A model generated the notes under the pieces. That model saw only the letters and a program-made list of their open reading frames with translations, made no database searches and had not been told where the DNA came from. Positions 1 to 64,000 of a stretch of DNA of 64,000 nucleotides are shown one piece after another. Numbering within the stretch: position 1 is the stretch's first letter; each line of letters opens with the position of its first letter. Source of the DNA: Thalia democratica (Eukaryota); contig OZ241828.1 of assembly GCA_965202585.1 (NCBI GenBank), positions 45,446,001 through 45,510,000 on the forward strand, given 5' to 3'. The position numbers and the translations under genes are program-made.

Positions 1-3000
1 GGTAAGGCCCACGCTGACGGCGAGACCGGATACGGCAAGGGCATGTACTACGGTCAACCATCCGGCATGATGTGGCCAGGAATGGACGGAAAGATCCACT
101 CTGATGCCGACGTCAACGCTCTCACCGGCGGAACCAAGATCATCTTCGGTGATGACAGCGACAAGGACGGCGAATACCCATACGGTACATTCAAGGCAAC
201 TCATGACGCTAAGGCTGCTTCAGACGCCGAAGCCTACGCTCCATTCGATGCAAACGGTGACTTCAAGGGAGGAGACTACTACGGCAAGGGCGGAAAGCAA
301 GGTATGATTGTTGTCGGAGGTGCCGATGTTGACGGTAAGGCCCACGCTGACGGCGAGACCGGATACGGCAAGGGCATGTACTACGGTCAACCATCCGGCA
401 TGATGTGGCCAGGAATGGACGGAAAGATCCACTCTGATGCCGACGTCAACGCTCTCACCGACGGAACCAAGATCATCTTCGGTGATGACAGCGACAAGGA
501 CAGCGAATACCCATACGGTACAATCAAGGCAACTAGTGACGCTAAGGCTGCTTCAGACGCCGAAGCCTACGCTCCATTCGATGCCCACGGTGACTTCAAG
601 GGAGGAGACTACTACGGCAAGGGCGGAAAGCAAGGTATGATTGTTGTCGGAGGTGCCGATGTTGACGGTAAGGCCCACGCTGACGGCGAGACCGGATACG
701 GCAAGGGCATGTACTACGGTCAACCATCCGGCATGATGTGGCCAGGAATGGACGGAAAGATCCACTCTGATGCCGACGTCAACGCTTTCACCGACGGAAC
801 CAAGATCATCTTCGGTGATGACAGCGACAAGGACGGCGAATACCCATACGGTACATTCAAGGCAACTGGTGACGCTAAGGCTGCTTCAGACGCCGAAGCC
901 TACGCTCCATTCGATGCCCACGGTGACTTCAAGGGAGGAGACTACTACGGCAAGGGCGGAAAGCAAGGTATGATTGTTGTCGGAGGTGCCGATGTTGACG
1001 GTAAGGCCCACGCTGACGGCGAGACCGGATACGGCAAGGGCATGTACTACGGTCAACCATCCGGCATGATGTGGCCAGGAATGGACGGAAAGATCCACTC
1101 TGATGCCGACGTCAACGCTCTCACCGACGGAACCAAGATCATCTTCGGTGATGACAGCGACAAGGACGGCGAATACCCATACGGTACATTCAAGGCAACT
1201 GGTGACGCTAAAGCTGCTTCAGACGCCGAAGCCTACGCTCCATTCGATGCCCACGGTGACTTCAAGGGAGGAGACTACTACGGCAAGGGCGGAAAGCAAG
1301 GTATGATTGTTGTCGGAGGTGCCGACGTTGACGGTAAGGCCCACGCTGACGGCGAGACCGGATACGGCAAGGGCATGTACTACGGTCAACCATCCGGCAT
1401 GATGTGGCCAGGAATGGACGGAAAGATCCACTCTGATGCCGACGTCAACGCTCTCACCGACGGAACCAAGATCATCTTCGGTGATGACAGCGACAAGGAC
1501 GGCGAATACCCATACGGTACATTCAAGGCAACTGGTGACGCTAAGGCTGCTTCAGACGCCGAAGCCTACGCTCCATTCGATGCCCACGGTGACTTCAAGG
1601 GAGGAGACTACTACGGCAAGGGCGGAAAGCAAGGTATGATTGTTGTCGGAGGTGCCGATGTTGACGGTAAGGCCCACGCTGACGGCGAGACCGGATACGG
1701 CAAGGGCATGTACTACGGTCAACCATCCGGCATGATGTGGCCAGGAATGGACGGAAAGATCCACTCTGATGCCGACGTCAACGCTCTCACCGACGGAACC
1801 AAGATCATCTTCGGTGATGACAGCGACAAGGACGGCTCATACCCATACGGTACATTCAAGGCAACTCATGACGCTAAGGCTGCTTCAGACGCCGAAGCCT
1901 ACGCTCCATTCGATGCCCACGGTGACTTCAAGGGAGGAGACTACTACGGCAAGGGCGGAAAGCAAGGTATGATTGTTGTCGGAGGTGCCGATGTTGACGG
2001 TAAGGCCCACGCTGACGGCGAGACCGGATACGGCAAGGGCATGTACTACGGTCAACCATCCGGAATGATGTGGCCAGGAATGGACGGAAAGATCCACTCT
2101 GACGCTGACGTCAACGCTCTCACCGACGGAACCAAGATCATCTTCGGTGATGACAGCGACAAGGACGGCGAATACCCATACGGTACAATCAAGGCAACTG
2201 GTGACGCTAAGGCTGCTTCAGACGCCGAAGCCTACGCTCCATTCGATGCCCACGGTGACTTCAAGGGAGGAGACTACTACGGCAAGGGCGGAAAGCAAGG
2301 TATGATTGTTGTCGGAGGTGCCGATGTTGACGGTAAGGCCCACGCTGACGGCGAGACCGGATACGGCAAGGGCATGTACTACGGTCAACCATCCGGAATG
2401 ATGTGGCCAGGAATGGACGGAAAGATCCACTCTGACGCTGACGTCAACGCTCTCACCGACGGAGCCAAGATCATCTTCGGTGATGACAGCGACAAGGACG
2501 GCGAATACCCATACGGTACATTCAAGGCAACTGGTGACGCTAAGGCTGCTTCAGACGCCGAAGCCTACGCTCCATTCGATGCCCACGGTGACTTCAAGGG
2601 AGGAGACTACTACGGCAAGGGCGGAAAGCAAGGTATGATTGTTGTCGGAGGTGCCGATGTTGACGGTAAGGCCCACGCTGACGGCGAGACCGGATACGGC
2701 AAGGGCATGTACTACGGTCAACCATCCGGAATGATGTGGCCAGGAATGGACGGAAAGATCCACTCTGATGCCGACGTCAACGCTCTCACCGACGGAACCA
2801 AGATCATCTTCGGTGATGACAGCGACAAGGACGGCGAATACCCATACGGTACATTCAAGGCAACTCATGACGCTAAGGCTGCTTCAGACGCCGAAGCCTA
2901 CGCTCCATTCGATGCCCACGTTGACTTCAAGGGAGGAGACTACTACGGCAAGGGCGGAAAGCAAGGTATGATTGTTGTCGGAGGTGCCGATGTTGACGGT

Positions 3001-6000
3001 AAGGCCCACGCTGACGGCGAGACCGGATACGGCAAGGGCATGTACTACGGTCAACCATCCGGAATGATGTGGCCAGGAATGGACGGAAAGATCCACTCTG
3101 ACGCTGACGTCAACGCTCTCACCGACGGAACCAAGATCATCTTCGGTGATGACAGCGACAAGGACGGCGAATACCCATACGGTACATTCAAGGCAACTCA
3201 TGACGCTAAGGCTGCTTCAGACGCCGAAGCCTACGCTCCATTCGATGCCCACGGTGACTTCAAGGGAGGAGACTACTACGGCAAGGGCGGAAAGCAAGGT
3301 ATGATTGTTGTCGGAGGTGCCGATGTTGACGGTAAGGCCCACGCTGACGGCGAGACCGGATACGGCAAGGGCATGTACTACGGTCAACCATCCGGCATGA
3401 TGTGGCCAGGAATGGACGGAAATATCCACTCTGATGCCGACGTCAACGCTCTCACCGACGGAACCAAGGTCATCTTCGGTGATGACAGCGGCAAGGACGG
3501 CGAATACCCATACGGTACATTCAAGGCAACTCATGACGCTAAGGCTGCTTCAGACGCCGAAGCCTACGCTCCATTCGATGCCCACGGTGACTTCAAGGGA
3601 GGAGACTACTACGGCAAGGGCGGAAAGCAAGGTATGATTGTTGTCGGAGGTGCCGATGTTGACGGTAAGGCCCACGCTGACGGCGAGACCGGATACGGCA
3701 AGGGCATGTACTACGGTCAACCATCCGGCATGATGTGGCCAGGAATGGACGGAAAGATCCACTCTGATGCCGACGTCAACGCTCTCACCGACGGAACCAA
3801 GATCATCTTCGGTGATGACAGCGACAAGGACGGCGAATACCCATACGGTACATTCAAGGCAACTCATGACGCTAAAGCTGCTTCAGACGCCGAAGCCTAC
3901 GCTCCATTCGATGCCCACGGTGACTTCAAGGGAGGAGACTACTACGGCAAGGGCGAAAAGCAAGGTATGATTGTTGTCGGAGGTGCCGATGTTGACGGTA
4001 AGGCCCACGCTGACGGCGAGACCGGATACGGCAAGGGCATGTACTACGGTCAACCATCCGGCATGATGTGGCCAGGAATGGACGGAAAGATCCACTCTGA
4101 TGCCGACGTCAACGCTCTCACCGACGGAACCAAGATCATCTTCGGTGATGACAGCGACAAGGACGGCGAATACCCATACGGTACATTCAAGGCAACTGGT
4201 GACGCTAAGGCTGCTTCAGACGCCGAAGCCTACGCTCCATTCGATGCCCACGGTGACTTCAAGGGAGGAGACTACTACGGCAAGGGCGGAAAGCAAGGTA
4301 TGATTGTTGTCGGAGGTGCCGATGTTGACGGTAAGGCCCACGCTGACGGCGAGACCGGATACGGCAAGGGCATGTACTACGGTCAACCATCCGGCATGAT
4401 GTGGCCAGGAATGGACGGAAAGATCCACTCTGACGCTGACGTCAACGCTCTCACCGACGGAACCAAGATCATCTTCGGTGATGACAGCGACAAGGACGGC
4501 TCATACCCATACGGTACATTCAAGGCAACTGGTGACGCTAAGGCTGCTTCAGACGCCGAAGCCTACGCTCCATTCGATGCCCACGGTGACTTCAAGGGAG
4601 GAGACTATTACGGCAAGGGCGGAAAGCAAGGTATGATTGTTGTCGGAGGTGCCGATGTTGACGGTAAGGCCCACGCTGATGGCGAGACCGGATACGGCAA
4701 GGGCATGTACTACGGTCAACCATCCGGCATGATGTGGCCAGGAATGGACGGAAAGATCCACTCTGATGCCGACGTCAACGCTCTCACCGACGGAACCAAG
4801 ATCATCTTCGGTGATGACAGCGACAAGGACGGCGAATACCCATACGGTACATTCAAGGCAACTGGTGACGCTAAAGCTGCTTCAGACGCCGAAGCCTACG
4901 CTCCATTCGATGCCCACGGTGACTTCAAGGGAGGAGACTACTACGGCAAGGGCGGAAAGCAAGGTATGATTGTTGTCGGAGGTGCCGACGTTGACGGTAA
5001 GGCCCACGCTGACGGCGAGACCGGATACGGCAAGGGCATGTACTACGGTCAACCATCCGGCATGATGTGGCCAGGAATGGACGGAAATATCCACTCTGAT
5101 GCCGACGTCAACGCTCTCACCGACGGAACCAAGATCATCTTCGGTGATGACAGCGACAAGGCCGGCTCATACCCATACGGTACATTCAAGGCAACTGGTG
5201 ACGCTAAGGCTGCTTCAGACGCCGAAGCCTACGCTCCATTCGATGCCCACGGTGACTTCAAGGGAGGAGACTACTACGGCAAGGGCGGAAAGCAAGGTAT
5301 GATTGTTGTCGGAGGTGCCGATGTTGACGGTAAGGCCCACGCTGACGGCGAGACCGGATACGGCAAGGGCATGTACTACGGTCAACCATCCGGCATGATG
5401 TGGCCAGGAATGGACGGAAAGATCCACTCTGATGCCGACGTCAACGCTCTCACCGACGGAACCAAGATCATCTTCGGTGATGACAGCGACAAGGACGGCG
5501 AATACCCATACGGTACATTCAAGGCAACTCATGACGCTAAGGCTGCTTCAGACGCCGAAGCCTACGCACCATTCGATGCCCACGGTGACTTCAAGGGAGG
5601 AGACTACTACGGCAAGGGCGGAAAGCAAGGTATGATTGTTGTCGGAGGTGCCGATGTTGACGGTAAGGCCCACGCTGACGGCGAGACCGGATACGGCAAG
5701 GGCATGTACTACGGTCAACCATCCGGCATGATGTGGCCAGGAATGGACGGAAAGATCCACTCTGATGCCGACGTCAACGCTCTCACCGACGGAACCAAGA
5801 TCATCTTCGGTGATGACAGCGACAAGGACGGCGAATACCCATACGGTACATTCAAGGCAACTGGTGACGCTAAGGCTGCTTCAGACGCCGAAGCCTACGC
5901 TCCATTCGATGCCCACGGTGACTTCAAGGGAGGAGACTACTACGGCAAGGGCGGAAAGCAAGGTATGATTGTTGTCGGAGGTGCCGATGTTGACGGTAAG

Positions 6001-9000
6001 GCCCACGCTGACGGCGAGACCGGATACGGCAAGGGCATGTACTACGGTCAACCATCCGGCATGATGTGGCCAGGAATGGACGGAAAGATCCACTCTGATG
6101 CCGACGTCAACGCTCTCACCGACGGAACCAAGATCATCTTCGGTGATGACAGCGACAAGGACGGCTCATACCCATACGGTACATTCAAGGCAACTCATGA
6201 CGCTAAGGCTGCTTCAGACGCCGAAGCCTACGCTCCATTCGATGCCCACGGTGACTTCAAGGGAGGAGACTACTACGGCAAGGGCGGAAAGCAAGGTATG
6301 ATTGTTGTCGGAGGTGCCGATGTTGACGGTAAGGCCCACGCTGACGGCGAGACCGGATACGGCAAGGGCATGTACTACGGTCAACCATCCGGAATGATGT
6401 GGCCAGGAATGGACGGAAAGATCCACTCTGACGCTGACGTCAACGCTCTCACCGACGGAACCAAGATCATCTTCGGTGATGACAGCGACAAGGACGGCGA
6501 ATACCCATACGGTACAATCAAGGCAACTGGTGACGCTAAGGCTGCTTCAGACGCCGAAGCCTACGCTCCATTCGATGCCCACGGTGACTTCAAGGGAGGA
6601 GACTACTACGGCAAGGGCGGAAAGCAAGGTATGATTGTTGTCGGAGGTGCCGATGTTGACGGTAAGGCCCACGCTGACGGCGAGACCGGATACGGCAAGG
6701 GCATGTACTACGGTCAACCATCCGGAATGATGTGGCCAGGAATGGACGGAAAGATCCACTCTGACGCTGACGTCAACGCTCTCACCGACGGAGCCAAGAT
6801 CATCTTCGGTGATGACAGCGACAAGGACGGCGAATACCCATACGGTACATTCAAGGCAACTGGTGACGCTAAGGCTGCTTCAGACGCCGAAGCCTACGCT
6901 CCATTCGATGCCCACGGTGACTTCAAGGGAGGAGACTACTACGGCAAGGGCGGAAAGCAAGGTATGATTGTTGTCGGAGGTGCCGATGTTGACGGTAAGG
7001 CCCACGCTGACGGCGAGACCGGATACGGCAAGGGCATGTACTACGGTCAACCATCCGGAATGATGTGGCCAGGAATGGACGGAAAGATCCACTCTGATGC
7101 CGACGTCAACGCTCTCACCGACGGAACCAAGATCATCTTCGGTGATGACAGCGACAAGGACGGCGAATACCCATACGGTACATTCAAGGCAACTCATGAC
7201 GCTAAGGCTGCTTCAGACGCCGAAGCCTACGCTCCATTCGATGCCCACGTTGACTTCAAGGGAGGAGACTACTACGGCAAGGGCGGAAAGCAAGGTATGA
7301 TTGTTGTCGGAGGTGCCGATGTTGACGGTAAGGCCCACGCTGACGGCGAGACCGGATACGGCAAGGGCATGTACTACGGTCAACCATCCGGAATGATGTG
7401 GCCAGGAATGGACGGAAAGATCCACTCTGACGCTGACGTCAACGCTCTCACCGACGGAACCAAGATCATCTTCGGTGATGACAGCGACAAGGACGGCGAA
7501 TACCCATACGGTACATTCAAGGCAACTCATGACGCTAAGGCTGCTTCAGACGCCGAAGCCTACGCTCCATTCGATGCCCACGGTGACTTCAAGGGAGGAG
7601 ACTACTACGGCAAGGGCGGAAAGCAAGGTATGATTGTTGTCGGAGGTGCCGATGTTGACGGTAAGGCCCACGCTGACGGCGAGACCGGATACGGCAAGGG
7701 CATGTACTACGGTCAACCATCCGGCATGATGTGGCCAGGAATGGACGGAAATATCCACTCTGATGCCGACGTCAACGCTCTCACCGACGGAACCAAGGTC
7801 ATCTTCGGTGATGACAGCGGCAAGGACGGCGAATACCCATACGGTACATTCAAGGCAACTCATGACGCTAAGGCTGCTTCAGACGCCGAAGCCTACGCTC
7901 CATTCGATGCCCACGGTGACTTCAAGGGAGGAGACTACTACGGCAAGGGCGGAAAGCAAGGTATGATTGTTGTCGGAGGTGCCGATGTTGACGGTAAGGC
8001 CCACGCTGACGGCGAGACCGGATACGGCAAGGGCATGTACTACGGTCAACCATCCGGCATGATGTGGCCAGGAATGGACGGAAAGATCCACTCTGATGCC
8101 GACGTCAACGCTCTCACCGACGGAACCAAGATCATCTTCGGTGATGACAGCGACAAGGACGGCGAATACCCATACGGTACATTCAAGGCAACTCATGACG
8201 CTAAAGCTGCTTCAGACGCCGAAGCCTACGCTCCATTCGATGCCCACGGTGACTTCAAGGGAGGAGACTACTACGGCAAGGGCGAAAAGCAAGGTATGAT
8301 TGTTGTCGGAGGTGCCGATGTTGACGGTAAGGCCCACGCTGACGGCGAGACCGGATACGGCAAGGGCATGTACTACGGTCAACCATCCGGCATGATGTGG
8401 CCAGGAATGGACGGAAAGATCCACTCTGATGCCGACGTCAACGCTCTCACCGACGGAACCAAGATCATCTTCGGTGATGACAGCGACAAGGACGGCGAAT
8501 ACCCATACGGTACATTCAAGGCAACTGGTGACGCTAAGGCTGCTTCAGACGCCGAAGCCTACGCTCCATTCGATGCCCACGGTGACTTCAAGGGAGGAGA
8601 CTACTACGGCAAGGGCGGAAAGCAAGGTATGATTGTTGTCGGAGGTGCCGATGTTGACGGTAAGGCCCACGCTGACGGCGAGACCGGATACGGCAAGGGC
8701 ATGTACTACGGTCAACCATCCGGCATGATGTGGCCAGGAATGGACGGAAAGATCCACTCTGACGCTGACGTCAACGCTCTCACCGACGGAACCAAGATCA
8801 TCTTCGGTGATGACAGCGACAAGGACGGCTCATACCCATACGGTACATTCAAGGCAACTGGTGACGCTAAGGCTGCTTCAGACGCCGAAGCCTACGCTCC
8901 ATTCGATGCCCACGGTGACTTCAAGGGAGGAGACTATTACGGCAAGGGCGGAAAGCAAGGTATGATTGTTGTCGGAGGTGCCGATGTTGACGGTAAGGCC

Positions 9001-12000
9001 CACGCTGATGGCGAGACCGGATACGGCAAGGGCATGTACTACGGTCAACCATCCGGCATGATGTGGCCAGGAATGGACGGAAAGATCCACTCTGATGCCG
9101 ACGTCAACGCTCTCACCGACGGAACCAAGATCATCTTCGGTGATGACAGCGACAAGGACGGCGAATACCCATACGGTACATTCAAGGCAACTGGTGACGC
9201 TAAAGCTGCTTCAGACGCCGAAGCCTACGCTCCATTCGATGCCCACGGTGACTTCAAGGGAGGAGACTACTACGGCAAGGGCGGAAAGCAAGGTATGATT
9301 GTTGTCGGAGGTGCCGACGTTGACGGTAAGGCCCACGCTGACGGCGAGACCGGATACGGCAAGGGCATGTACTACGGTCAACCATCCGGCATGATGTGGC
9401 CAGGAATGGACGGAAATATCCACTCTGATGCCGACGTCAACGCTCTCACCGACGGAACCAAGATCATCTTCGGTGATGACAGCGACAAGGCCGGCTCATA
9501 CCCATACGGTACATTCAAGGCAACTGGTGACGCTAAGGCTGCTTCAGACGCCGAAGCCTACGCTCCATTCGATGCCCACGGTGACTTCAAGGGAGGAGAC
9601 TACTACGGCAAGGGCGGAAAGCAAGGTATGATTGTTGTCGGAGGTGCCGATGTTGACGGTAAGGCCCACGCTGACGGCGAGACCGGATACGGCAAGGGCA
9701 TGTACTACGGTCAACCATCCGGCATGATGTGGCCAGGAATGGACGGAAAGATCCACTCTGATGCCGACGTCAACGCTCTCACCGACGGAACCAAGATCAT
9801 CTTCGGTGATGACAGCGACAAGGACGGCGAATACCCATACGGTACATTCAAGGCAACTCATGACGCTAAGGCTGCTTCAGACGCCGAAGCCTACGCACCA
9901 TTCGATGCCCACGGTGACTTCAAGGGAGGAGACTACTACGGCAAGGGCGGAAAGCAAGGTATGATTGTTGTCGGAGGTGCCGATGTTGACGGTAAGGCCC
10001 ACGCTGACGGCGAGACCGGATACGGCAAGGGCATGTACTACGGTCAACCATCCGGCATGATGTGGCCAGGAATGGACGGAAAGATCCACTCTGATGCCGA
10101 CGTCAACGCTCTCACCGACGGAACCAAGATCATCTTCGGTGATGACAGCGACAAGGACGGCGAATACCCATACGGTACATTCAAGGCAACTGGTGACGCT
10201 AAAGCTGCTTCAGACGCCGAAGCCTACGCTCCATTCGATGCCCACGGTGACTTCAAGGGAGGATACTACTACGGCAAGGGCGGAAAGCAAGATATGATTG
10301 TTGTCGGAGGTGCCGATGTTGACGGTAAGGCCCACGCTGACGGCGAGACCGGATACGGCAAGGGCATGTACTACGGTCAACCATCCGGCATGATGTGGCC
10401 AGGAATGGACGGAAAGATCCACTCTGATGCCGACGTCAACGCTCTCACCGACGGAACCAAGATCATCTTCGGTGATGACAGCGACAAGGACGGCTCATAC
10501 CCATACGGTACATTCAAGGCAACTCATGACTCAAAGGCTGCTTCAGACGCCGAAGCCTACGCTCCATTCGATGCCCACGGTGACTTCAAGGGAGGAGACT
10601 ACTACGGCAAGGGCGGAAAGCAAGGTATGATTGTTGTCGGAGGTGCCGATGTTGACGGTAAGGCCCACGCTGACGGCGAGACCGGATACGGCAAGGGCAT
10701 GTACTACGGTCAACCATCCGGCATGATGTGGCCAGGAATGGACGGAAAGATCCACTCTGATGCCGACGTCAACGCTCTCACCGACGGAACCAAGATCATC
10801 TTCGGTGATGACAGCGACAAGGACGGCGAATACCCATACGGTACATTCAAGGCAACTGGTAACGCTAAAGCTGCTTCAGACGCCGAAGCCTACGCTCCAT
10901 TCGATGCCCACGGTGACTTCAAGGGAGGAGACTACTACGGCAAGGGCGGAAAGCAAGGTATGATTGTTGTCGGAGGTGCCGACGTTGACGGTAAGGCCCA
11001 CGCTGACGGCGAGACCGGATACGGCAAGGGCATGTACTACGGTCAACCATCCGGCATGATGTGGCCAGGAATGGACGGAAAGATCCACTCTGACGCTGAC
11101 GTCAACGCTCTCACCGACGGAACCAAGATCATCTTCGGTGATGACAGCGACAAGGCCGGCTCATACCCATACGGTACATTCAAGGCAACTGGTGACGCTA
11201 AGGCTGCTTCAGACGCCGAAGCCTACGCTCCATTCGATGCCCACGGTGACTTCAAGGGAGGAGACTACTACGGCAAGGGCGGAAAGCAAGGTATGATTGT
11301 TGTCGGAGGTGCCGATGTTGACGGTAAGGCCCACGCTGACGGCGAGACCGGATACGGCAAGGGCATGTACTACGGTCAACCATCCGGCATGATGTGGCCA
11401 GGAATGGACGGAAAGATCCACTCTGACGCTGATGTCAACGCTCTCACCGACGGAACCAAGATCATCTTCGGTGATGACAGCGACAAGGACGGCGAATACC
11501 CATACGGTACATTCAAGGCAACTCATGACGCTAAGGCTGCTTCAGACGCCGAAGCCTTTGCTCCATTCGATGCCCACGGTGACTTCAAGGGAGGAGACTA
11601 CTACGGCAAGGGCGGAAAGCAAGGTATGATTGTTGTCGGAGGTTCCGATGTTGACGGTAAGGCCCACGCTGACGGCGAGACCGGATACGGCAAGGGCATG
11701 TACTACGGTCAACCATCCGGCATGATGTGGCCAGGAATGGACGGAAAGATCCACTCTGATGCCGACGTCAACGCTCTCACCGACGGAACCAAGATCATCT
11801 TCGGTGATGACAGCGACAAGGACGTTGAATACCCATACGGTACATTCAAGGCAACTGGTGACGCTAAGGCTGCTTCAGACGCCGAAGCCTACGCTCCATT
11901 CGATGTCCACGGTGACTTCAAGGGAGGAGATAACTACGGCAAGGACGGCAAGCAAGGTATGATTGTTGTCGGAGGTGCCGATGTTGACGGTAAGACCTAC

Positions 12001-15000
12001 GCTGACGGTGAAACCGGATACGGCAAGGGCATGTACTACGGTCAACCATCCGGAATGATGTGGCCAGGAATGGACGGAAAGATCCACTCTGACGCTGACG
12101 TCAACGCTCTCACCGACGGAGCCAAGATCATCTTCGGTGATGACAGCGACAAGGACGGCTCATACCCATACGGTACATTCAAGGCAACTCATGACGCTAA
12201 GGCTGCTTCAGACGCCGAAGCCTACGCTCCATTCGATGCCCACGGTGACTTCAAGGGAGGAGACTACTACGGCAAGGGCGGAAAGCAAGGTATGATTGTT
12301 GTCGGAGGTGCCGACGTTGACGGTAAGGCCCACGCTGACGGCGAGACCGGATACGGCAAGGAAATGTACTACGGTCAACCATCCGGCATGATGTGGCCAG
12401 GAATGGACGGAAAGATCCACTCTGATGCCGACGTCAACGCTCTCACCGACGGAACCAAGATCATCTTCGGTGATGACAGCGACAAGGACGGCGAATACCC
12501 ATACGGTACATTCAAGGCAACTGGTGACGCTAAAGCTGCTTCAGACGCCGAAGCCTACGCTCCATTCGATGCCCACGGTGACTTCAAGGGAGGAGACTAC
12601 TACGGCAAGGGCGGAAAGCAAGGTATGATTGTTGTCGGAGGTGCCGACGTTGACGGTAAGGCCCACGCTGACGGCGAGACCGGATACGGCAAGGGCATGT
12701 ACTACGGTCAACCATCCGGCATGATGTGGCCAGGAATGGACGGAAATATCCACTCTGATGCCGACGTCAACGCTCTCACCGACGGAACCAAGATCATCTT
12801 CGGTGATGACAGCGACAAGGCCGGCTCATACCCATACGGTACATTCAAGGCAACTGGTGACGCTAAGGCTGCTTCAGACGCCGAAGCCTACGCTCCATTC
12901 GATGTCCACGGTGACTTCAAGGGAGGAGATAACTACGGCAAGGACGGCAAGCAAGGTATGATTGTTGTCGGAGGTGCCGATGTTGACGGTAAGACCTACG
13001 CTGACGGTGAAACCGGATACGGCAAGGGCATGTACTACGGTCAACCATCCGGAATGATGTGGCCAGGAATGGACGGAAAGATCCACTCTGACGCTGACGT
13101 CAACGCTCTCACCGACGGAGCCAAGATCATCTTCGGTGATGACAGCGACAAGGACGGCTCATACCCATACGGTACATTCAAGGCAACTCATGACGCTAAG
13201 GCTGCTTCAGACGCCGAAGCCTACGCTCCATTCGATGCCCACGGTGACTTCAAGGGAGGAGACTACTACGGCAAGGGCGGAAAGCAAGGTATGATTGTTG
13301 TCGGAGGTGCCGACGTTGACGGTAAGGCCCACGCTGACGGCGAGACCGGATACGGCAAGGGCATGTACTACGGTCAACCATCCGGCATGATGTGGCCAGG
13401 AATGGACGGAAAGATCCACTCTGATGCCGACGTCAACGCTCTCACCGACGGAACCAAGATCATCTTCGGTGATGACAGCGACAAGGACGGCGAATACCCA
13501 TACGGTACATTCAAGGCAACTGGTGACGCTAAAGCTGCTTCAGACGCCGAAGCCTACGCTCCATTCGATGCCCACGGTGACTTCAAGGGAGGAGACTACT
13601 ACGGCAAGGGCGGAAAGCAAGGTATGATTGTTGTCGGAGGTGCCGACGTTGACGGTAAGGCCCACGCTGACGGCGAGACCGGATACGGCAAGGGCATGTA
13701 CTACGGTCAACCATCCGGCATGATGTGGCCAGGAATGGACGGAAATATCCACTCTGATGCCGACGTCGACGCTCTCACCGACGGAACCAAGATCATCTTC
13801 GGTGATGACAGCGACAAGGCCGGCTCATACCCATACGGTACATTCAAGGCAACTGGTGACGCTAAGGCTGCTTCAGACGCCGAAGCCTACGCTCCATTCG
13901 ATGCCCACGGTGACTTCAAGGGAGGAGACTACTACGGCAAGGGCGGAAAGCAAGGTATGATTGTTGTCGGAGGTGCCGATGTTGACGGTAAGGCCCACGC
14001 TGACGGCGAGACCGGATACGGCAAGGGCATGTACTACGGTCAACCATCCGGCATGATGTGGCCAGGAATGGACGGAAAGATCCACTCTGATGCCGACGTC
14101 AACGCTCTCACCGACGGAACCAAGATCATCTTCGGTGATGACAGCGACAAGGACGGCGAATACCCATACGGTACATTCAAGGCAACTCATGACGCTAAGG
14201 CTGCTTCAGACGCCGAAGCCTACGCACCATTCGATGCCCACGGTGACTTCAAGGGAGGAGACTACTACGGCAAGGGCGGAAAGCAAGGTATGATTGTTGT
14301 CGAAGGTGCCGATGTTGACGGTAAGGCCCACGCTGACGGCGAGACCGGATACGGCAAGGGCATGTACTACGGTCAACCATCCGGCATGATGTGGCCAGGA
14401 ATGGACGGAAAGATCCACTCTGATGCCGACGTCAACGCTCTCACCGACGGAACCAAGATCATCTTCGGTGATGACAGCGACAAGGACGGCGAATACCCAT
14501 ACGGTACATTCAAGGCAACTGGTGACGCTAAAGCTGCTTCAGACGCCGAAGCCTACGCTCCATTCGATGCCCACGGTGACTTCAAGGGAGGAGACTACTA
14601 CGGCAAGGGCGGAAAGCAAGATATGATTGTTGTCGGAGGTGCCGATGTTGACGGTAAGGCCCACGCTGACGGCGAGACCGGATACGGCAAGGGCATGTAC
14701 TACGGTCAACCATCCGGCATGATGTGGCCAGGAATGGACGGAAAAATCCACTCTGATGCCGACGTCAACGCTCTCACCGACGGAACCAAGATCATCTTCG
14801 GTGATGACAGCGACAAGGACGGCTCATACCCATACGGTACATTCAAGGCAACTCATGACTCAAAGGCTGCTTCAGACGCCGAAGCCTACGCTCCATTCGA
14901 TGCCCACGGTGACTTCAAGGGAGGAGACTACTACGGCAAGGGCGGAAAGCAAGGTATGATTGTTGTCGGAGGTGCCGATGTTTACGGTAAGGCCCACGCT

Positions 15001-18000
15001 GACGGCGAGACCGGATACGGCAAGGGCATGTACTACGGTCAACCATCCGGCATGATGTGGCCAGGAATGGACGGAAAGATCCACTCTGATGCCGACGTCA
15101 ACGCTCTCACCGACGGAACCAAGATCATCTTCGGTGATGACAGCGACAAGGACGGCGAATACCCATACGGTACATTCAAGGCAACTGGTAACGCTAAAGC
15201 TGCTTCAGACGCCGAAGCCTACGCTCCATTCGATGCCCACGGTGACTTCAAGGGAGGAGACTACTACGGCAAGGGCGGAAAGCAAGGTATGATTGTTGTC
15301 GGAGGTGCCGACGTTGACGGTAAGGCCCACGCTGACGGCGAGACCGGATACGGCAAGGGCATGTACTACGGTCAACCATCCGGCATGATGTGGCCAGGAA
15401 TGGACGGAAAGATCCACTCTGACGCTGACGTCAACGCTCTCACCGACGGAACCAAGATCATCTTCGGTGATGACAGCGACAAGGCCGGCTCATACCCATA
15501 CGGTACATTCAAGGCAACTGGTGACGCTAACGCTGCTTCAGACGCCGAAGCCTACGCTCCATTCGATGCCCACGGTGACTTCAAGGGAGGAGACTACTAC
15601 GGCAAGGGCGGAAAGCAAGGTATGATTGTTGTCGGAGGTGCCGATGTTGACGGTAAGGCCCACGCTGACGGCGAGACCGGATACGGCAAGGGCATGTACT
15701 ACGGTCAACCATCCGGCATGATGTGGCCAGGAATGGACGGAAAGATCCACTCTGACGCTGATGTCAACGCTCTCACCGACGGAACCAAGATCATCTTCGG
15801 TGATGACAGCGACAAGGACGGCGAATACCCATACGGTACATTCAAGGCAACTCATGACGCTAAGGCTGCTTCAGACGCCGAAGCCTTTGCTCCATTCGAT
15901 GCCCACGGTGACTTCAAGGGAGGAGACTACTACGGCAAGGGCGGAAAGCAAGGTATGATTGTTGTCGGAGGTTCCGACGTTGACGGTAAGGCCCACGCTG
16001 ACGGCGAGACCGGATACGGCAAGGGCATGTACTACGGTCAACCATCCGGCATGATGTGGCCAGGAATGGACGGAAAGATCCACTCTGATGCCGACGTCAA
16101 CGCTCTCACCGACGGAACCAAGATCATCTTCGGTGATGACAGCGACAAGGACGGCGAATACCCATACGGTACATTCAAGGCAACTCATGACGCTAAGGCT
16201 GCTTCAGACGCCGAAGCCTACGCTCCATTCGATGTCCACGGTGACTTCAAGGGAGGAGATAACTACGGCAAGGACGGCAAGCAAGGTATGATTGTTGTCG
16301 GAGGTGCCGATGTTGACGGTAAGACCTACGCTGACGGTGAAACCGGATACGGCAAGGGCATGTACTACGGTCAACCATCCGGAATGATGTGGCCAGGAAT
16401 GGACGGAAAGATCCACTCTGACGCTGACGTCAACGCTCTCACCGACGGAGCCAAGATCATCTTCGGTGATGACAGCGACAAGGACGGCGAATACCCATAC
16501 GGTACATTCAAGGCAACTCATGACGCTAAGGCTGCTTCAGACGCCGAAGCCTACGCTCCATTCGATGCCCACGGTGACTTCAAGGGAGGAGACTACTACG
16601 GCAAGGGCGGAAAGCAAGGTATGATTGTTGTCGGAGGTGCCGATGTTGACGGTAAGGCCCACGCTGACGGCGAGACCGGATACGGCAAGGGCATGTACTA
16701 CGGTCAACCATCCGGCATGATGTGGCCAGGAATGGACGGAAAGATCCACTCTGATGCCGACGTCAACGCTCTCACCGACGGAACCAAGATCATCTTCGGT
16801 GATGACAGCGACAAGGACGGCTCATACCCATACGGTACATTCAAGGCAACTGGTGACGCTAAGGCTGCTTCAGACGCCGAAGCCTACGCTCCATTCGATG
16901 TCCACGGTGACTTCAAGGGAGGAGATAACTACGGCAAGGACGGCAAGCAAGGTATGATTGTTGTCGGAGGTGCCGATGTTGACGGTAAGGCCTACGCTGA
17001 CGGTGAGACCGGATACGGCAAGGGCATGTACTACGGTCAACCATCCGGCATGATGTGGCCAGGAATGGACGGAAAGATCCACTCTGATGCCGACGTCAAC
17101 GCTCTCACCGACGGAACCAAGATCATCTTCGGTGATGACAGCGACAAGGACGGCTCATACCCATACGGTACATTCAAGGCAACTGGTGACGCTAAGGCTG
17201 CTTCAGACGCCGAAGCCTACGCTCCATTCGATGTCCACGGTGACTTCAAGGGAGGAGATAACTACGGCAAGGACGGCAAGCAAGGTATGATTGTTGTCGG
17301 AGGTGCCGATGTTGACGGTAAGGCCTACGCTGACGGTGAAACCGGATACGGCAAGGGCATGTACTACGGTCAACCATCCGGAATGATGTGGCCAGGAATG
17401 GACGGAAAGATCCACTCTGATGCCGACGTCAACGCTCTCACCGACGGAACCAAGATCATCTTCGGTGATGATAGCGACAAGGACGGCTCATACCCATACG
17501 GTACATTCAAGGCAACTCATGACGCTAAGGCTGCTTCAGACGCCGAAGCCTACGCTCCATTCGATGCCCACGGTGACTTCAAGGGAGGAGACTACTACGG
17601 CAAGGGCGGAAAGCAAGGTATGATTGTTGTCGGAGGTGCCGATGTTGACGGTAAGGCCTACGCTGACGGTGAAACCGGATACGGCAAGGGCATGTACTAC
17701 GGTCAACCATCCGGCATGATGTGGCCAGGAATGGACGGAAAGATCCACTCTGACGCTGACGTCAACGCTCTCACCGACGGAACCAAGATCATCTTCGGTG
17801 ATGACAGCGACAAGGACGGCTCATACCCATACGGTACATTCAAGGCAACTCATGACGCTAAGGCTGCTTCAGACGCCGAAGCCTACGCTCCATTCGATGC
17901 CCACGGTGACTTCAAGGGAGGAGACTACTACGGCAAGGGCGGAAAGCAAGGTATGATTGTTGTCGGAGGTGCCGATGTTGACGGTAAGGCCCACGCTGAC

Positions 18001-18283
18001 GGCAAGACCGGATACGGCAAGGGCATGTACTACGGTCAACCATCCGGCATGATGTGGCCAGGAATGGACGGAAAGATCCACTCTGATGCCGACGTCAACG
18101 CTCTCACCGACGGAACCAAGATCATCTTCGGTGATGACAGCGACAAGGACGGCGAATACCCATACGGTACATTCAAGGCAACTCATGACGCTAAGGCTGC
18201 TTCAGACGCCGAAGCCTACGCTCCATTCGATGCCCACGGTGACTTCAAGGGAGGAGACTATTACGGAAAGGGCGGAAAGCAAG
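1..18283 (+). CDS. Exon A (5'-truncated) of a giant tandem-repeat protein: ~55 copies of a 111-aa Gly/Asp/Ala/Lys/Tyr-rich unit; family not recognised
   Basis: Frame +1 is open from base 1 (ggt aag gcc cac...), so the ATG at 43 is just the repeat-internal Met. There are no stops or indels across the array. The track ORF runs on to 18318 (tail MSIHFYSFNF*) only by reading into AT-rich sequence past the GT donor at 18284. Confidence 0.9.
1400..10200 (+). repeat. 13-unit (4329-bp) higher-order tandem duplication (approximate ends)
   Basis: Rare variants recur at +4329: 2921/7250, 3423/7752, 3956/8285, 5088/9417, 5568/9897. Confidence 0.9.
9100..16460 (+). repeat. Second block repeated at the same 13-unit offset (~9.1-12.1 kb vs ~13.4-16.5 kb)
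   Basis: Variants recur at +4329: 9417/13746, 9897/14226, 10531/14860, 10861/15190, 11557/15886, 11644/15973, 11906/16235, 12121/16450. Confidence 0.88.
11850..13880 (+). repeat. 3-unit (999-bp) tandem duplication
   Basis: Variants recur at +999: 11906/12905, 12121/13120, 12747/13746. Confidence 0.85.
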
Positions 18284-18289
18284 GTATGT
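18281..18289 (+). promoter_or_regulatory. 5' splice donor AAG|GTATGT
   Basis: Close match to the U2-type donor consensus AG|GTRAGT/GTATGT. It differs from the repeat-internal AAG|GTATGA only at +6 and coincides with the GC-to-AT composition step. Confidence 0.88.
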
Positions 18290-21200
18290 CAATTCACTTT
18301 TATTCTTTTAACTTTTAGATTTAGCGCTACATAGATCTAAAAATATTTAGATTTCGTTATTTTATTTTATTTATAACCTGTCTGTGGTGTTTTTAGTAAA
18401 GTTGAATTTTGTATATTCAACGATATGTATCATATTTATTATTATTTTTATAGAATTAGTTTTTACTTTATTAGGTTTTTTCAATGATTTATTTTTCAAA
18501 AAATTTTTCCAGCCACCCTTAAATTTTTTGTTAACTCATATTTTTTCTTTCTTTGCTTACTAAATCTTTACGTTATAAAAAAAATTAAATCATTTTCTTA
18601 ATTAGTTAGTTTTTATTTCTTTGTTATACGTACCATGTCATTCCGTCAACTTTTGAAGCGAGAAATCTTATTTTGACTAACTTTTGATTTTTTACGATAC
18701 CGGTCATATGTTTGTTTAAGAAATCTATGATAATTTTTTCTATTTAGTAAGTTATGATTTTTATTTACTTTTTAATTAGACTTTATGAAATAAAGCTTTA
18801 GTTATTAAAATTGCTTAATTCTAAAATTAATTACTATTATTTCTGAAGGGAGATTGTTTGTCTGAATATTTAGCAACTAAGAAATATTTATTTCTAAAGG
18901 AACTTGATTATCTAATTATTTAGCAATTAGGAACTATTTTCTATTGCATTTTTTGAAAAATTACGTTTTACTCTGTAATTATAATTGCACATATATAGAT
19001 AAACAGACTATTACATATTTCTCTTAAAGTATATATTTTAGTTAAACTTTAGTTTCAACTTAAAACTAACAATAAAAACTATAGCAGACAACATGAGAAC
19101 TGTATTGAAATTGAACAGTACTATTTTTTGTTTTACTTTAACAGATGTAGAATATATTCTTCAATTTGTTACGTATAGTAGTATTTTTTGTTAGAGGATT
19201 GTTGTAGATTTTATTTCGAAAACTTTATTTATAACCATGTTTTAGTCGATTGTTTTGATTTATTTGAATTAATGATATTAGTTTAACACTTACTCAGGTC
19301 TTAGATTAAAAAGTCTTAACATCTATACATTTTATAGTAAATTAGTTTTGTTATAAGTTTTGTTTTTTTAATAAATGTACCTTTTTGGTGATAAGCTTCA
19401 AAATGTGGTTTGTAAGTTGTTTTTTAGCTAAATATTCTTAAAACAATTTTTAATTTAATATTTGCTTTTCACTAATAATTTAATTTCAATAAAGTTTTTT
19501 TAACTGCTTTTAAAAATAGAAACTTTAATAACTCAAAACATTTGATTTCTTTTAACTTGCTTGATATTTATGGCAATAGTTAACTGATTTTGATAAAATT
19601 ATCTTATTTATGATAATTTTTTTTACAAAAAAAGAGTGTTTTTGTTACTAAAAAATTTTTCGTCTGACTAAGCAGTACAAAAAGCGTAAGAACCATTTAG
19701 ATAATTCTTTAGTGTTGTTTTAAAAAGAAACACTTTACTTATATTTTTATATAAGTTTTATTTTAATTAAAATGTTCTACTAGCAGGTTATATCAACCCA
19801 AAAATTTTAAGTTAAAATGTCTTTTTCCATTATATGCACGCTTAAAATATCTTTTTTGTAATAAAACAATAGTTTTTTATAAAATTAATTTGGCTTATGT
19901 ACTTCTATATGGATGGTAATTTACTAGTGTATTATGTTCTTTTAGTTGTTTTAATGTTCAACAATTAGTTTTATGTACTTTCATCGTTTCAATACGATGC
20001 TTAAGTATGTAAAAAATAATAAGTTTTGTATAATTTCCTATAACGTTATTTATTATGGCTTAAGAAAAAATTCTAACTTATTTATAAGTTTTTTTTTTTA
20101 TAAATAGCAACTTAGTGGTTTTCATAGTTTTAAAACTTCTTAGTTTGTGTGCTTTATTAGATACACTAGATATAATCTATGAAAAATAATAGAAGAAGTC
20201 ATTACATCTGCATAACTAATAGCTAATGTTTAGATACAATACACTAATTAGGAAATAAATTAAAAAGTTTAAATAAGAAGACTTTTTGTGTGTTTGTTAG
20301 TAATGACGATTATGTCTTAAAATAGCGTCATATTAGTTTTAATGTGTACAAAATACAATTTTTTAAAGGATTTTATTCTGTTATAAAAAACTATGAGTGT
20401 TATGTTTTAAGATATTTAATTAAGGTACTTTCTAAAGTCAATAAAGATGAAATTGCTCTCCACGAATAGGCTTCTTTTAATTTCTTGATAATCAACAACT
20501 TTCTTGTGTGGTTGAAACGAAAAACTGCTCAACAATTTTTCTTAACAACTGTGCGTTTTCAAAACTTATTGAATTTTTACAACGTCTGAAAAATACAACC
20601 CTTTTTTGATATTCAGAACCTTTCTTGTATGGATAACAAAGGGAAAAAAACAACGCAAAAACATTTCTTTACAACTGCGTGATTGATAAATTTTATGGTT
20701 TTTAAACAGTTTCATAAACATAACATCCCTTTTTAATAAAAAACTTATTTATTTTTACAACAACTTGTTTTCAAAATTTTTAAGAAAAATAATACTTTAG
20801 TTGCATTATTTAAATATTAAAATTAAGTATACAACAACATTACATCATTACTGTTTGTTGTAAAAAAGTATGTACTGTTCATTTTACGCTAATAGATTAA
20901 TATTTTAATTATAATGCTAATAAATAAACTATTCTAAGTTAGAGGTGGGCAATGCATGGTCCGTAGGCATGCAGAAATTTTGTCTCTTGATTTATTTTTA
21001 GCTTAAAAACTACCTGGGAAAAACAAATAATAATTGGCTTCTATTAACAAGTGTTTTGAATTGTGACTATGTGTGATTTATGGTACACAATAGTGTTTGT
21101 TGAATAATCATTGCAGTTCAACTTTGCTTATTAAGTGTATGTTTTTGATTTAATACAAATATAAAATAAAACAAAGTTTTAGCTAAAAATCCTCCAGAGA

Positions 21201-21548
21201 AAACGATATTTTGTAATAAAGAGCTAATTAAAAAAATCTAGAAAAGTTGTCTCTTTATGCTTTATAAAAGTTTTTTAAATAAAATGCATATAAAGAAACT
21301 TTAATTGTTAGATTTATAAAAACGTAAGGAATGCACAGACTATTCATAATAAATTATCTCGCTCAAGAACTTTTTATAGAAAACCGCACCCACAAAAAGA
21401 AAACTTATCCATTTTTATAACAATAAAAAACTTATCTAGTTAGTTTATTAAAAAACTAAATACTTTAATAATAAAAATTACAAAAAAAATCTCTCTTTCC
21501 AATATCTTTTTAAAGTTTTTAATATACATTAAACCGTAATAATTCTAG
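18284..21548 (+). other. Spliceosomal GT-AG intron, 3265 bp, phase 1
   Basis: Starts GTATGT exactly where repeat identity stops and ends TTCTAG exactly where repeat-homologous coding resumes. It is very AT-rich and has no internal ORF in the track. Joining G(18283) to GT(21549-21550) rebuilds the Gly codon that starts the unit and converts frame +1 to frame +2, the frame of array 2. Confidence 0.88.
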
Positions 21549-21550
21549 GT
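21490..21550 (+). promoter_or_regulatory. 3' splice acceptor TTCTAG|GT with upstream pyrimidine-rich stretch
   Basis: AG at 21547-21548, preceded by ctctctttcc...ctttt...gttttt (21491-21520). There is an in-frame TAA at 21530-21532 just upstream and no in-frame ATG until 21959, so the downstream frame is best read as an internal exon rather than a new gene start. Confidence 0.8.
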
Positions 21551-21894
21551 TCAGTAATTGTCGGAAAGACTAACGTAGACGGAAAAGCATACAGTGATAC
21601 TAAATCCTTGTTGGATGATGCTGTTTACTATGGAAAATCTGAAAATACACTTTGGCCAGAAATTGTCAAAAATTTAAAAACGGATGTTGCAGCTAAATAT
21701 AACGACGATGGAATTACATACAGTTTGAATAATCTTCATGGGAATACAAATAAATTGCTTGAATCTGTATTATCATCTAAGTCAGTATTAGATGCAAGTT
21801 CTAATACAAATGCCAATTCAAATAAAGAAATATATGGTAGCTTTACCGGGGACGACTTTTATAAACAAATAAAACAAAACAGTAAAATTGTTAC
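21549..21894 (+). repeat. Single highly diverged, AT-rich copy of the repeat unit (112 codons)
   Basis: Translates as GSVIVGKTNVDGKAYSDTKSLLDDAVYYGKSENTLWPEIVKNLKTDVAAKYNDDG...IYGSFTGDDFY. This aligns colinearly with GMIVVGGADVDGKAYADGETGYGKGMYYGQPSGMMWPGMDGKIHSDADVNALTDG...VHGDFKGGDNY. Confidence 0.9.
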
Positions 21895-63800: not shown

Positions 63801-64000
63801 ACTTCAAGGGAGGAGATAACTACGGCAAGGACGGCAAGCAAGGTATGATTGTTGTCGGAGGTGCCGATGTTGACGGTAAGGCCTACGCTGACGGTGAAAC
63901 CGGATACGGCAAGGGCATGTACTACGGTCAACCATCCGGAATGATGTGGCCAGGAATGGACGGAAAGATCCACTCTGACGCTGACGTCAACGCTCTCACC
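21549..64000 (+). CDS. Exon B (3'-truncated, at least 42,452 bp) of the same giant repeat protein: one degenerate unit plus ~126 canonical 111-aa units
   Basis: I translated 21551-21960 by hand in frame +2 with no stop. The antisense shadow ORFs keep an exact 333-bp register from 22136 to 63761 (125 x 333), so there are no net indels. No closed ORF is reported in this frame, which is what is expected if it runs off the window without a stop. Confidence 0.88.
28900..34170 (+). repeat. 8-unit (2664-bp) tandem duplication (approximate ends)
   Basis: Variants recur at +2664: 29584/32248, 29907/32571, 30434/33098, 30458/33122, 30938/33602, 31409/34073. Confidence 0.9.
38400..60300 (+). repeat. 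Long-range duplication: ~38.4-44.3 kb recurs at ~55.1-60.3 kb (48-50-unit offset)
   Basis: At +15984 (48 units): 40400/56384, 40822/56806, 40963/56947, 41720/57704, 43052/59036, 43397/59381, 43458/59442, 44028/60012. At +16650 (50 units): 38468/55118, 39058/55708. Confidence 0.85.

Follow-up and report, generated by a model that had tools for sequence, protein, structure and literature searches.

A giant 111-residue-repeat protein on a mucin/VWF scaffold in Thalia democratica, a candidate for the backbone of the feeding net

We examined a 64,000-nt stretch of the genome of the salp Thalia democratica, a pelagic tunicate (the window; contig OZ241828.1, positions 45,446,001 to 45,510,000, forward strand; assembly GCA_965202585.1), which is filled from end to end by one tandem array coding for a 111-aa unit. 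The array is the middle of a gene of about 110 kb. Taken as a whole, the explanation that we judge probable is that this gene encodes a polymer-forming protein of about 30,000 aa, built on the scaffold shared by gel-forming mucins (GFM) and VWF, carrying about 230 copies of the unit, and possibly forming the backbone of the feeding net. We are highly confident of the first part of this explanation, that the protein is real, expressed, giant and carried on a GFM/VWF scaffold. The whole protein belongs to a known superfamily; its novelty lies in the repeat domain, in the scale and in a polyanionic core that is not made of glycan. Full-text literature searches found no paper describing the gene.

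One reading frame through two giant exons

In the assembly used here, of 802 Mb (801.8 Mb), the window is G000:C4:45446001-45510000, and 100 kb were added on each side for analysis of the flanks. Window coordinates count from the first letter of the 64,000-nt stretch as position 1, and negative values lie in the upstream flank. Tandem Repeats Finder reports a single array with a period of 333 nt over 1-64000, with 191.4 copies and 91% matches. Two open frames run through the window, both on the + strand (frame 0, 1-18315; frame 1, 21533-64000), while the remaining frames contain 202 to 1,616 stops. GC content is 54-56% along the window except at 18-22 kb, where it is 26%.

Splicing 1-18283 to 21549-64000 gives 60,735 nt, or 20,245 codons, with zero stops, and the joined frame reads as successive 111-aa units plus a single divergent unit of about 112 aa right past the junction. 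An earlier note on this DNA, made from the letters of the window, had proposed exactly this spliced frame, open at both ends, and it holds; the frame also continues into both flanks, from window coordinate -9266 to 72403, with a stop at 72404. Array k-mers persist for about 9 kb upstream and 7.5 kb downstream of the window and then end abruptly, giving way to DNA of about 25% GC, and the array itself occupies -8650 to 71480. The two giant exons together hold 78.4 kb of coding sequence, 26,135 stop-free codons and 228 unit anchors, from which we count about 230 units. The note's figure of at least 20,245 aa of 111-aa units was thus an understatement. The features of the array are as follows.

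About -9252 to 18283 (G000:C4:45436748-45464283), + strand: giant exon A, about 27.5 kb, with about 80 A-type units, from the open frame, the unit census and RNA contigs.
Within exon A, 5' of the A-type units, + strand: a VWC-type Cys-rich module.
18284-21548, + strand: the sole intron within the array, 3265 nt, 26% GC, phase 1, with a GTATGT donor and a TTCTAG acceptor, from these sites and an RNA contig.
21549-21894, + strand: the divergent unit that opens exon B, AT-rich, with a GC content at third codon positions (GC3) of 0.23 and loosely related to the consensus unit, from the translation.
21549-72388 (G000:C4:45467549-45518388), + strand: giant exon B, about 50.8 kb, with about 150 B-type units, from the open frame, the consensus and k-mer depth.
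Within exon B, after the B-type units and downstream of the window, + strand: VWC-type Cys-rich modules.

The units are strongly homogenised. The consensus of the A-type units, which precede the intron, and that of the B-type units, which follow it, lie 13 nt apart, and divergence inside the types is 1.2% for A and 0.44% for B (98.8-99.6% identity within a subfamily). Among the 230 units are 107 distinct DNA sequences. Exact copies of runs of 8 and of 13 consecutive units are present, giving identity peaks at lags 8 and 13, and these block duplications are the mark of unequal exchange. Large central exons with homogenised tandem repeats are a property of mucins, and here there are two such exons with about 230 units. 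When the genome was searched with the unit, with only the best candidates scored, all 230-231 matches listed fell at this locus and no paralogue was seen elsewhere.

Every unit of both giant exons also contains two consensus-like 5' splice sites. The real donor reads CAAG|GTATGT at the start of the intron (18284), and decoys reading CAAG|GTATGA, one base off, number 79 in exon A and 146 in exon B. A second decoy, ACG|GTAAGG, occurs 78 times in exon A and 149 times in exon B. The two exons contain about 450 decoy donors in all and are read through all the same; if an exon-A GTATGA decoy were spliced to the real acceptor, whole units would drop out in frame.

Read depth and RNA support the size of the array

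Both transcription and splicing of the gene were observed, and the assembled copy number is genuine. In sequencing run X1, a 3,683-nt contig across the unique intron had a k-mer depth of 65.5 and six repeat contigs had depths of 4,954 to 11,310, so that the depth ratios were 76, 170, 104, 136, 91 and 173; for these six stretches the assembly has 31-mer counts of 70, 159, 111, 140, 78 and 175. This match excludes an artefact in which the assembler expanded the array. X1 may be the sample that was assembled, but the depth test is nonetheless independent of the assembler. A read depth pointing to far fewer units had been named in the earlier note as the result that would remove the giant-protein claim, and instead the X1 ratios reproduced the assembled copy number. 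Run X2, from the same sample as X1, gave about 80% of the expected repeat depth.

A different picture came from run X3, taken from another sample under a different organism label. Its intron is 99.6% identical to that of the window, and a short 5' stretch of the intron (18417-18528) was resolved into two alleles. Repeat depth in X3 was 11-50 times the unique depth, against 32-172 predicted, or about 30% of what was expected. This suggests that the X3 individual has an array roughly threefold shorter and that copy number is strongly polymorphic.

The expression data that the note had called for agree with the predicted gene. In RNA run X8, one contig passes directly from 18283 to 21549, leaving out 3265 nt that are bounded by GT..AG. 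RNA contigs from four libraries cross from the units into the N-terminal or C-terminal junction of the array, and one of these, of 4,977 nt, comes from an oligo-dT library. Across 12 libraries recorded as RNA, from about eight studies, 28-72% of the exon words were present. In X5, a small run recorded under the organism's name, the exon words were covered to 87% and the intron-containing stretch to only 20%. The sequence and its relatives are also present in marine plankton metagenomes and in Tara Oceans metatranscriptomes. In X8, repeat-to-unique depth ratios reached about 300.

Flanking exons carry a mucin/VWF scaffold

The earlier note had suggested extending the contig both ways in search of a signal peptide and terminal domains. 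The terminal domains were found. Upstream exons on the + strand encode, in order, VWD, C8, TIL; VWD, C8, TIL, E; and TIL'/E', VWD, C8, TIL. By Pfam these are three successive VWD-C8-TIL sets at -30989 to -17211, which is the D1-D2-D'D3 arrangement of gel-forming mucins and VWF. The E-values in these flanking exons were 4e-16, 1e-13 and 1.5e-18 for C8 and 5e-13 for VWD, with TIL also found, and the VWD exon of D3 aligns to the D3 of MUC5AC, MUC5B, MUC2 and VWF with E-values of 1e-27 to 6e-20. After D3 comes an exon of 1,234 aa made of about six super-modules, each a Ser/Thr/Gly/Asn-rich linker followed by a VWC-type Cys-rich block, and a degenerate copy of the 111-aa unit lies inside the first linker.

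On the C-terminal side, at 72646-78691, Pfam finds VWC (4.7e-07 and 1.7e-12), VWD (2.8e-05) and Cys_knot (2.5e-11), and the order is further VWC modules, a D4 assembly of VWD-C8-TIL, and the cystine knot. The best PDB match of the cystine knot is the corresponding domain of VWF (2.3e-12), and every cysteine in the aligned stretch is matched, including CxCC. The introns adjoining the giant exons split VWC modules at equivalent points, and the halves complement each other across the exon borders, an arrangement that links the giant exons with the exons beside them. The gene extends over at least 45,415,011-45,524,691, about 110 kb, and we estimate its whole product at about 30,000 residues, 26,135 from the giant exons and about 4,000 from the rest.

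The interval between D3 and the array holds no coding-like open stretch besides Cys-rich VWC-type modules. No VWA domain was found in the exons scanned, which is a weak test since it covered open stretches only, and no chitin-binding or CysD domain was seen in the Pfam scans of the flanking exons. Just upstream of the D1 VWD exon, on the + strand at -33006 to -31745 (L015:6994-8255), are three sushi/CCP-like Cys-rich exons; they could either add further N-terminal domains to this gene or mark where a neighbouring gene ends, and a Pfam search of one of the three found nothing.

The same scaffold has been drawn for Ciona Ci-GFM1, MUC2 and VWF (PMC6109156). With Ci-GFM1 and the gel-forming mucins MUC2, MUC5AC, MUC5B, MUC6 and MUC19, the Thalia protein shares the N-terminal D1-D2-D'D3 and the C-terminal VWC, D4 and cystine knot. 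It also shares with gel-forming mucins very large central exons, homogenised repeats that evolve fast between lineages, and an expected disulfide polymerisation, head to head and tail to tail. The differences lie in the middle. The Thalia repeats are not rich in Pro, Thr and Ser but carry negative charge on the polypeptide itself (15% Asp), and VWC-type modules alternate with linkers where no CysD was seen. At about 25,600 aa, the repeat core by itself exceeds full-length human MUC2 (5,179 aa; PMC6109156) several times over. Ci-GFM1 has chitin-binding domains, whereas none was seen in the Thalia protein. VWF shares the D-assembly scaffold and provides the best-matching cystine knot, with its cysteines conserved, but the Thalia protein shows no VWA between D3 and D4 and is about ten times longer.

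In outline, the Thalia protein works like other giant repeat proteins, namely spidroins, Chironomus Balbiani-ring proteins and the giant Ca2+-stiffened adhesins of bacteria. Its giant exons hold near-identical units by the hundred, its codons are strongly biased in the translational manner, its length is apparently polymorphic, and its acidic repeat may bind Ca2+. No relationship in sequence to any of them is known, and the termini here are those of mucins and VWF and not spidroin N- and C-terminal domains or RTX. Titin is in a similar size class (we estimate about 30,000 aa, and the earlier note puts human titin at about 34,000 aa), but the Thalia protein is predicted to be extracellular, ends in a cystine knot, lacks Ig and FN3 domains, and is encoded largely by two exons instead of several hundred. 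The note's suggestion of a giant, secreted-type structural protein of titin's size class with homogenised repeats is therefore supported, whereas its suggestion of a possibly new family stands for the repeat unit, which has no match in Pfam, PDB or the ESM Atlas, and not for the protein as a whole, which has the mucin/VWF scaffold.

The repeat unit

The unit has a mass of 11.49-11.51 kDa, so the earlier estimates of about 11.5 kDa per unit and about 2.1 MDa for the portion in the window were accurate. Each unit of 111 aa contains 22 Gly, 17 Asp, 12 Ala, 10 Lys and 8 Tyr (20%, 15%, 11%, 9% and 7%) and no Cys. The isoelectric point is 4.4, the calculated net charge about -9, and the hydrophobicity low, with a grand average of hydropathy (GRAVY) of -0.67 to -0.69. 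Five Thr, five Ser and four Pro per 111 residues make up 12.6%, far from the Pro/Thr/Ser (PTS) domain of a mucin in the strict sense, and with this content dense O-glycosylation is not expected. The unit can be read as two halves, each a putative beta-strand with a DxDxDG-like loop. About 1,850 Tyr are spread across the array, several in D-Y or E-Y contexts and in the motifs GDYYG and GEYPYG; the B-type units have lost one of them (Y93N).

Family searches with the unit returned nothing of a described family. Nothing in Pfam exceeded the cut-off, the best being CBM-like_2 with 21.8 bits against a cut-off of 27, and the sub-threshold matches to CBM-like_2, eCIS_core and Peptidase_M4 were rejected as fits to short acidic loops. 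A profile search of PDB with the unit alignment gave 0 matches at E <= 10, and a search of the ESM Atlas gave no usable match. A HMMER scan of 1.84 billion protein representatives gave nine matches, none informatively named. Tara metatranscriptomes supplied five near-identical fragments, and an ENA metagenome contig supplied a sixth (P0004). Two more matches are genuine but distant relatives, with 35-44% identity, and the ninth is spurious. A fibre-like protein of 2,759 aa (P0009, E = 3e-06) was rejected as a low-complexity match. One of the distant relatives is a Tara cluster with a period of 110 aa. The other, P0008 (NCBI MEL6706587), is encoded on a 641-nt contig and entered as a hypothetical protein under a Bacteroidota metagenome-assembled genome; given its sole relatives, it is probably misbinned tunicate DNA.

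The alignment of the unit with its relatives has a conserved core of M-[YF]-[YF]-x-Q, WPG, DAD, I-[IV]-F, DG-x-YP, APFD-x-H-x-DF and VVG. By these comparisons of sequence, the 111-aa repeat unit matches no described family and is new.

Codon usage in the repeats

The repeats use codons in an extreme way. TAC stands at 100%, TTC at 99%, AAG at 98%, AAC at 95%, CAC at 93%, CCA and CAA at 100% and GAA at 86%; NCG, GGG and GTG codons hardly occur, CAG and CCC are avoided, and GGA and GGT are preferred. GC3 is 0.60 in the repeats against 0.23 in the other exons of the gene and in the divergent unit after the intron, which have the AT-rich codons of the genome at large. GC-biased gene conversion was considered as the source of the GC-rich array and judged unlikely, because GAA, CAA, CCA, GGA and GGT are preferred while NCG, GGG, CAG and CCC are avoided. 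The preference for GAA, CAA and CCA speaks for translational selection, spread through the array by homogenisation, and the confinement of such extreme optimisation to the repeats points to very heavy synthesis.

Related loci keep the scaffold

In a sister lineage, a metagenome contig of 10 kb (L045) shows the identical exon-intron layout, the GTATGT donor, and a counterpart of the divergent unit. Because this counterpart sits at the same place after the intron, the divergent unit is a conserved feature and not the product of recent decay. Identity to the Thalia locus is 86-92% in the flanking exons and 79% in the intron, whereas the pieces of units are 96-97% identical in nucleotides and the 36 terminal unit residues are identical in protein. 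That the units are more alike than the flanking exons and intron suggests that the unit is under constraint.

On large ENA contigs there are relatives of the 1,234-aa exon, with 37-43% identity. On one of these (L046; contig ctg29702, 560 kb; 18989-25436), a similar Cys-rich module is followed by a different repeat, of 206 aa, in an open frame of at least 4,354 aa. This repeat is made of two 103-aa halves and is 99.7% homogeneous. It is Cys-free, with an isoelectric point of 4.9, rich in Gly, Ala, Ser, Asp and Lys, low in PTS, with 5% Tyr, and GC-rich relative to its flanks. Homology between the two repeats was tried and rejected (hhalign probability 0.4%). A scaffold that is kept while its core is swapped for repeats of like composition favours a role in bulk physical chemistry, and in vertebrate mucins the PTS domains have likewise been replaced on a conserved scaffold.

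Proposed mechanism and alternatives

By analogy with mucins and VWF, for which the polymerisation model is described in PMC6109156 and references therein, the cystine knot would join chains tail to tail into dimers, and the D3 assembly would add head-to-head links to give disulfide-bonded chains or nets. The observed basis for these predicted multimers is the conservation of the cystine-knot cysteines. The repeat core would then supply length and a polyanionic, cation-binding and hydrated character in place of the glycans of mucins; its composition suggests about 2,000 net negative charges on the polypeptide. In the role that glycan charges have in MUC2, such charges could allow compact, Ca2+-shielded storage in granules and fast expansion on secretion into seawater. 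The most likely product would be the fibre or gel backbone of the feeding net that the endostyle secretes continuously. Papers describe tunicate feeding nets as secreted by the endostyle and leave their molecular make-up open. The role in the feeding net, with secretion by the endostyle, is suggested by the codon bias and the biology of the animal, and we put it forward tentatively, at a little short of an even call.

Several points weigh against this explanation. Upstream of D1, no convincing first exon or signal peptide emerged from a scan for an ATG with a hydrophobic stretch behind it. The N-terminal D assemblies are putatively joined to the array on three grounds: their strand, their order and the logic of the modules. 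In the distant homologues the DxDxDG-like loop is not kept, which weakens a model with specific Ca2+ sites. Structure prediction on two or three units, as the earlier note had advised, did not succeed: AlphaFold2 gave no usable model for three units without an alignment or for two units with an 11-row alignment, with predicted local distance difference test (pLDDT) scores of 30.9 and 26.5 respectively. The link to the endostyle and the net is one that we infer, and proteomic work on the filter mucus of ascidians turned up no peptides specific to mucus and argued against special proteins (bioRxiv 10.1101/2025.01.21.634085).

The same polymer protein might instead serve another secreted structure, such as the tunic matrix, the gut envelope membrane, the attachment plaques of zooid chains, or the coat of the egg or embryo. 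The GFM scaffold is generic for secreted polymers, and the characterised tunicate GFM, Ci-GFM1, belongs to the gut envelope membrane rather than to the net (PMC6109156). Yet Ci-GFM1 bears the chitin-binding domains that were not seen in the Thalia protein, and a codon bias confined to the repeats, together with wide presence in plankton metatranscriptomes, fits a continuous bulk product like the net, so we regard this alternative as rather unlikely. Size as an artefact, either an expanded array or a non-functional satellite that simply stays open, is hardly credible. Near-identical 333-nt repeats over 80 kb are indeed hard to assemble, and X3 has only about 30% of the expected repeat depth, but copy-number variation between individuals fits X3 equally well, and X1 and X2 (the latter at about 80%) reproduce the assembly 31-mer counts class by class. 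Moreover, there is no stop or frameshift in 78.4 kb against 202 to 1,616 stops in the other frames, and the gene is spliced, abundant in RNA, and biased in its codons in the translational manner.

Two further alternatives concern what the units do. They could be folded, beta-rich, Ca2+-stiffened domains, as in the extender regions of giant bacterial adhesins and in cadherins, so that the array would be a rod of about 1 um serving as a spacer or ruler between disulfide nodes and not a disordered polyanion. The two halves of beta-strand and DxDxDG-like loop, with 17 Asp per unit, would suit such a rod, as would the distant Tara homologues, which keep a period of 110-111 aa and, at about 40% identity, the hydrophobic, aromatic and Pro positions of WPG, I-x-F, YP, APFD and VVG. 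At about 4 nm each, 230 units would reach about 0.9 um, comparable in magnitude to the filter pores, for which 0.5-2.2 um has been published. Against this, AlphaFold yields no fold with or without a small alignment, hydrophobic content is low (the GRAVY given above), the DxDxDG loop is not conserved, and a non-homologous acidic repeat of 206 aa at the same place in L046 speaks for composition over fold; we consider the rod doubtful. Far less probable is that the array is a substrate for iodination, a stand-in for thyroglobulin delivered with the mucus and digested. The endostyle is the homologue of the thyroid (PMC6109156), and the eight Tyr per unit with the GDYYG and GEYPYG motifs would suit this purpose, but that is an argument from composition alone, one Tyr has been lost in the B-type units, and the L046 repeat has only 5% Tyr. 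To our knowledge tunicates lack thyroglobulin.

Returning to the feeding net, a more specific proposal is that the protein is the structural backbone of the thaliacean filter and that the number of units, varying among individuals, sets the spacing of the disulfide nodes and with it mesh size or hydration. We regard this as improbable.

Genome context and neighbouring features

A check on the origin of the DNA came from the mitochondrial COX1 (contig C1833), which contains five in-frame TGA codons and gives a normal protein (GGGDP...FWFFGHPEVY) only when AGR is read as Gly and TGA as Trp. We know of no group other than tunicates with a mitochondrial code in which AGR is Gly, so the need for this reading indicates a tunicate origin. 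In a search with this COX1, close matches (86-92% identity) came from Tara fragments, and hits carrying a species name did not exceed 52% identity. The T. democratica genome has been reported as 790.7 Mb with 25.3% GC, the lowest GC among 38 tunicate genomes (PMC13746493). COX1-like stretches full of stops lie at G000:C4:56842736-56945724, about 11 Mb from the window, and at C757:30096-33638 (L030-L032); they are probably nuclear copies of mitochondrial DNA.

Upstream of the gene are two short GC-rich tandem arrays (about 51-57% GC) at -45155 to -44553 and -41252 to -40794 (L014), open in several frames, in surroundings of 25% GC, and further GC-rich islands occur at about -76 kb and -60 kb. 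A neighbouring gene on the + strand, at 95714-101003 (L022-L023), encodes a zinc-finger DNA-binding domain of the nuclear-receptor type, CxxC...GYHYxxxxCEGCKGFFRR. Open frames with the pattern 'YIGST...F..R...H' are found on both sides of the gene, at -70097, -63304, 133093 and 163484, and in sequence they resemble GIY-YIG-type endonuclease domains of mobile elements.

Significance

At about 30,000 aa, this would be a second animal protein in titin's size class, and the gene has a coding exon of about 50.8 kb in which hundreds of consensus-like decoy splice donors lie. The gene shows that the mucin/VWF scaffold is able to carry a core that is a polyanion of polypeptide and not of glycan; if the proposed mechanism is true, the protein-borne polyanion stands in for the glycan polyanion of ordinary mucins. 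The apparent threefold difference in copy number between samples suggests a fast-evolving trait. Salps and other tunicates remove a large share of ocean microbes by means of mucous nets, and this expressed gene, with its polymer-forming scaffold and silk-like codon optimisation, is a concrete candidate for a component of those nets. If unit number does set the mesh, the array would determine genetically, and in a way that can evolve fast, which microbes of the ocean are caught by salps.

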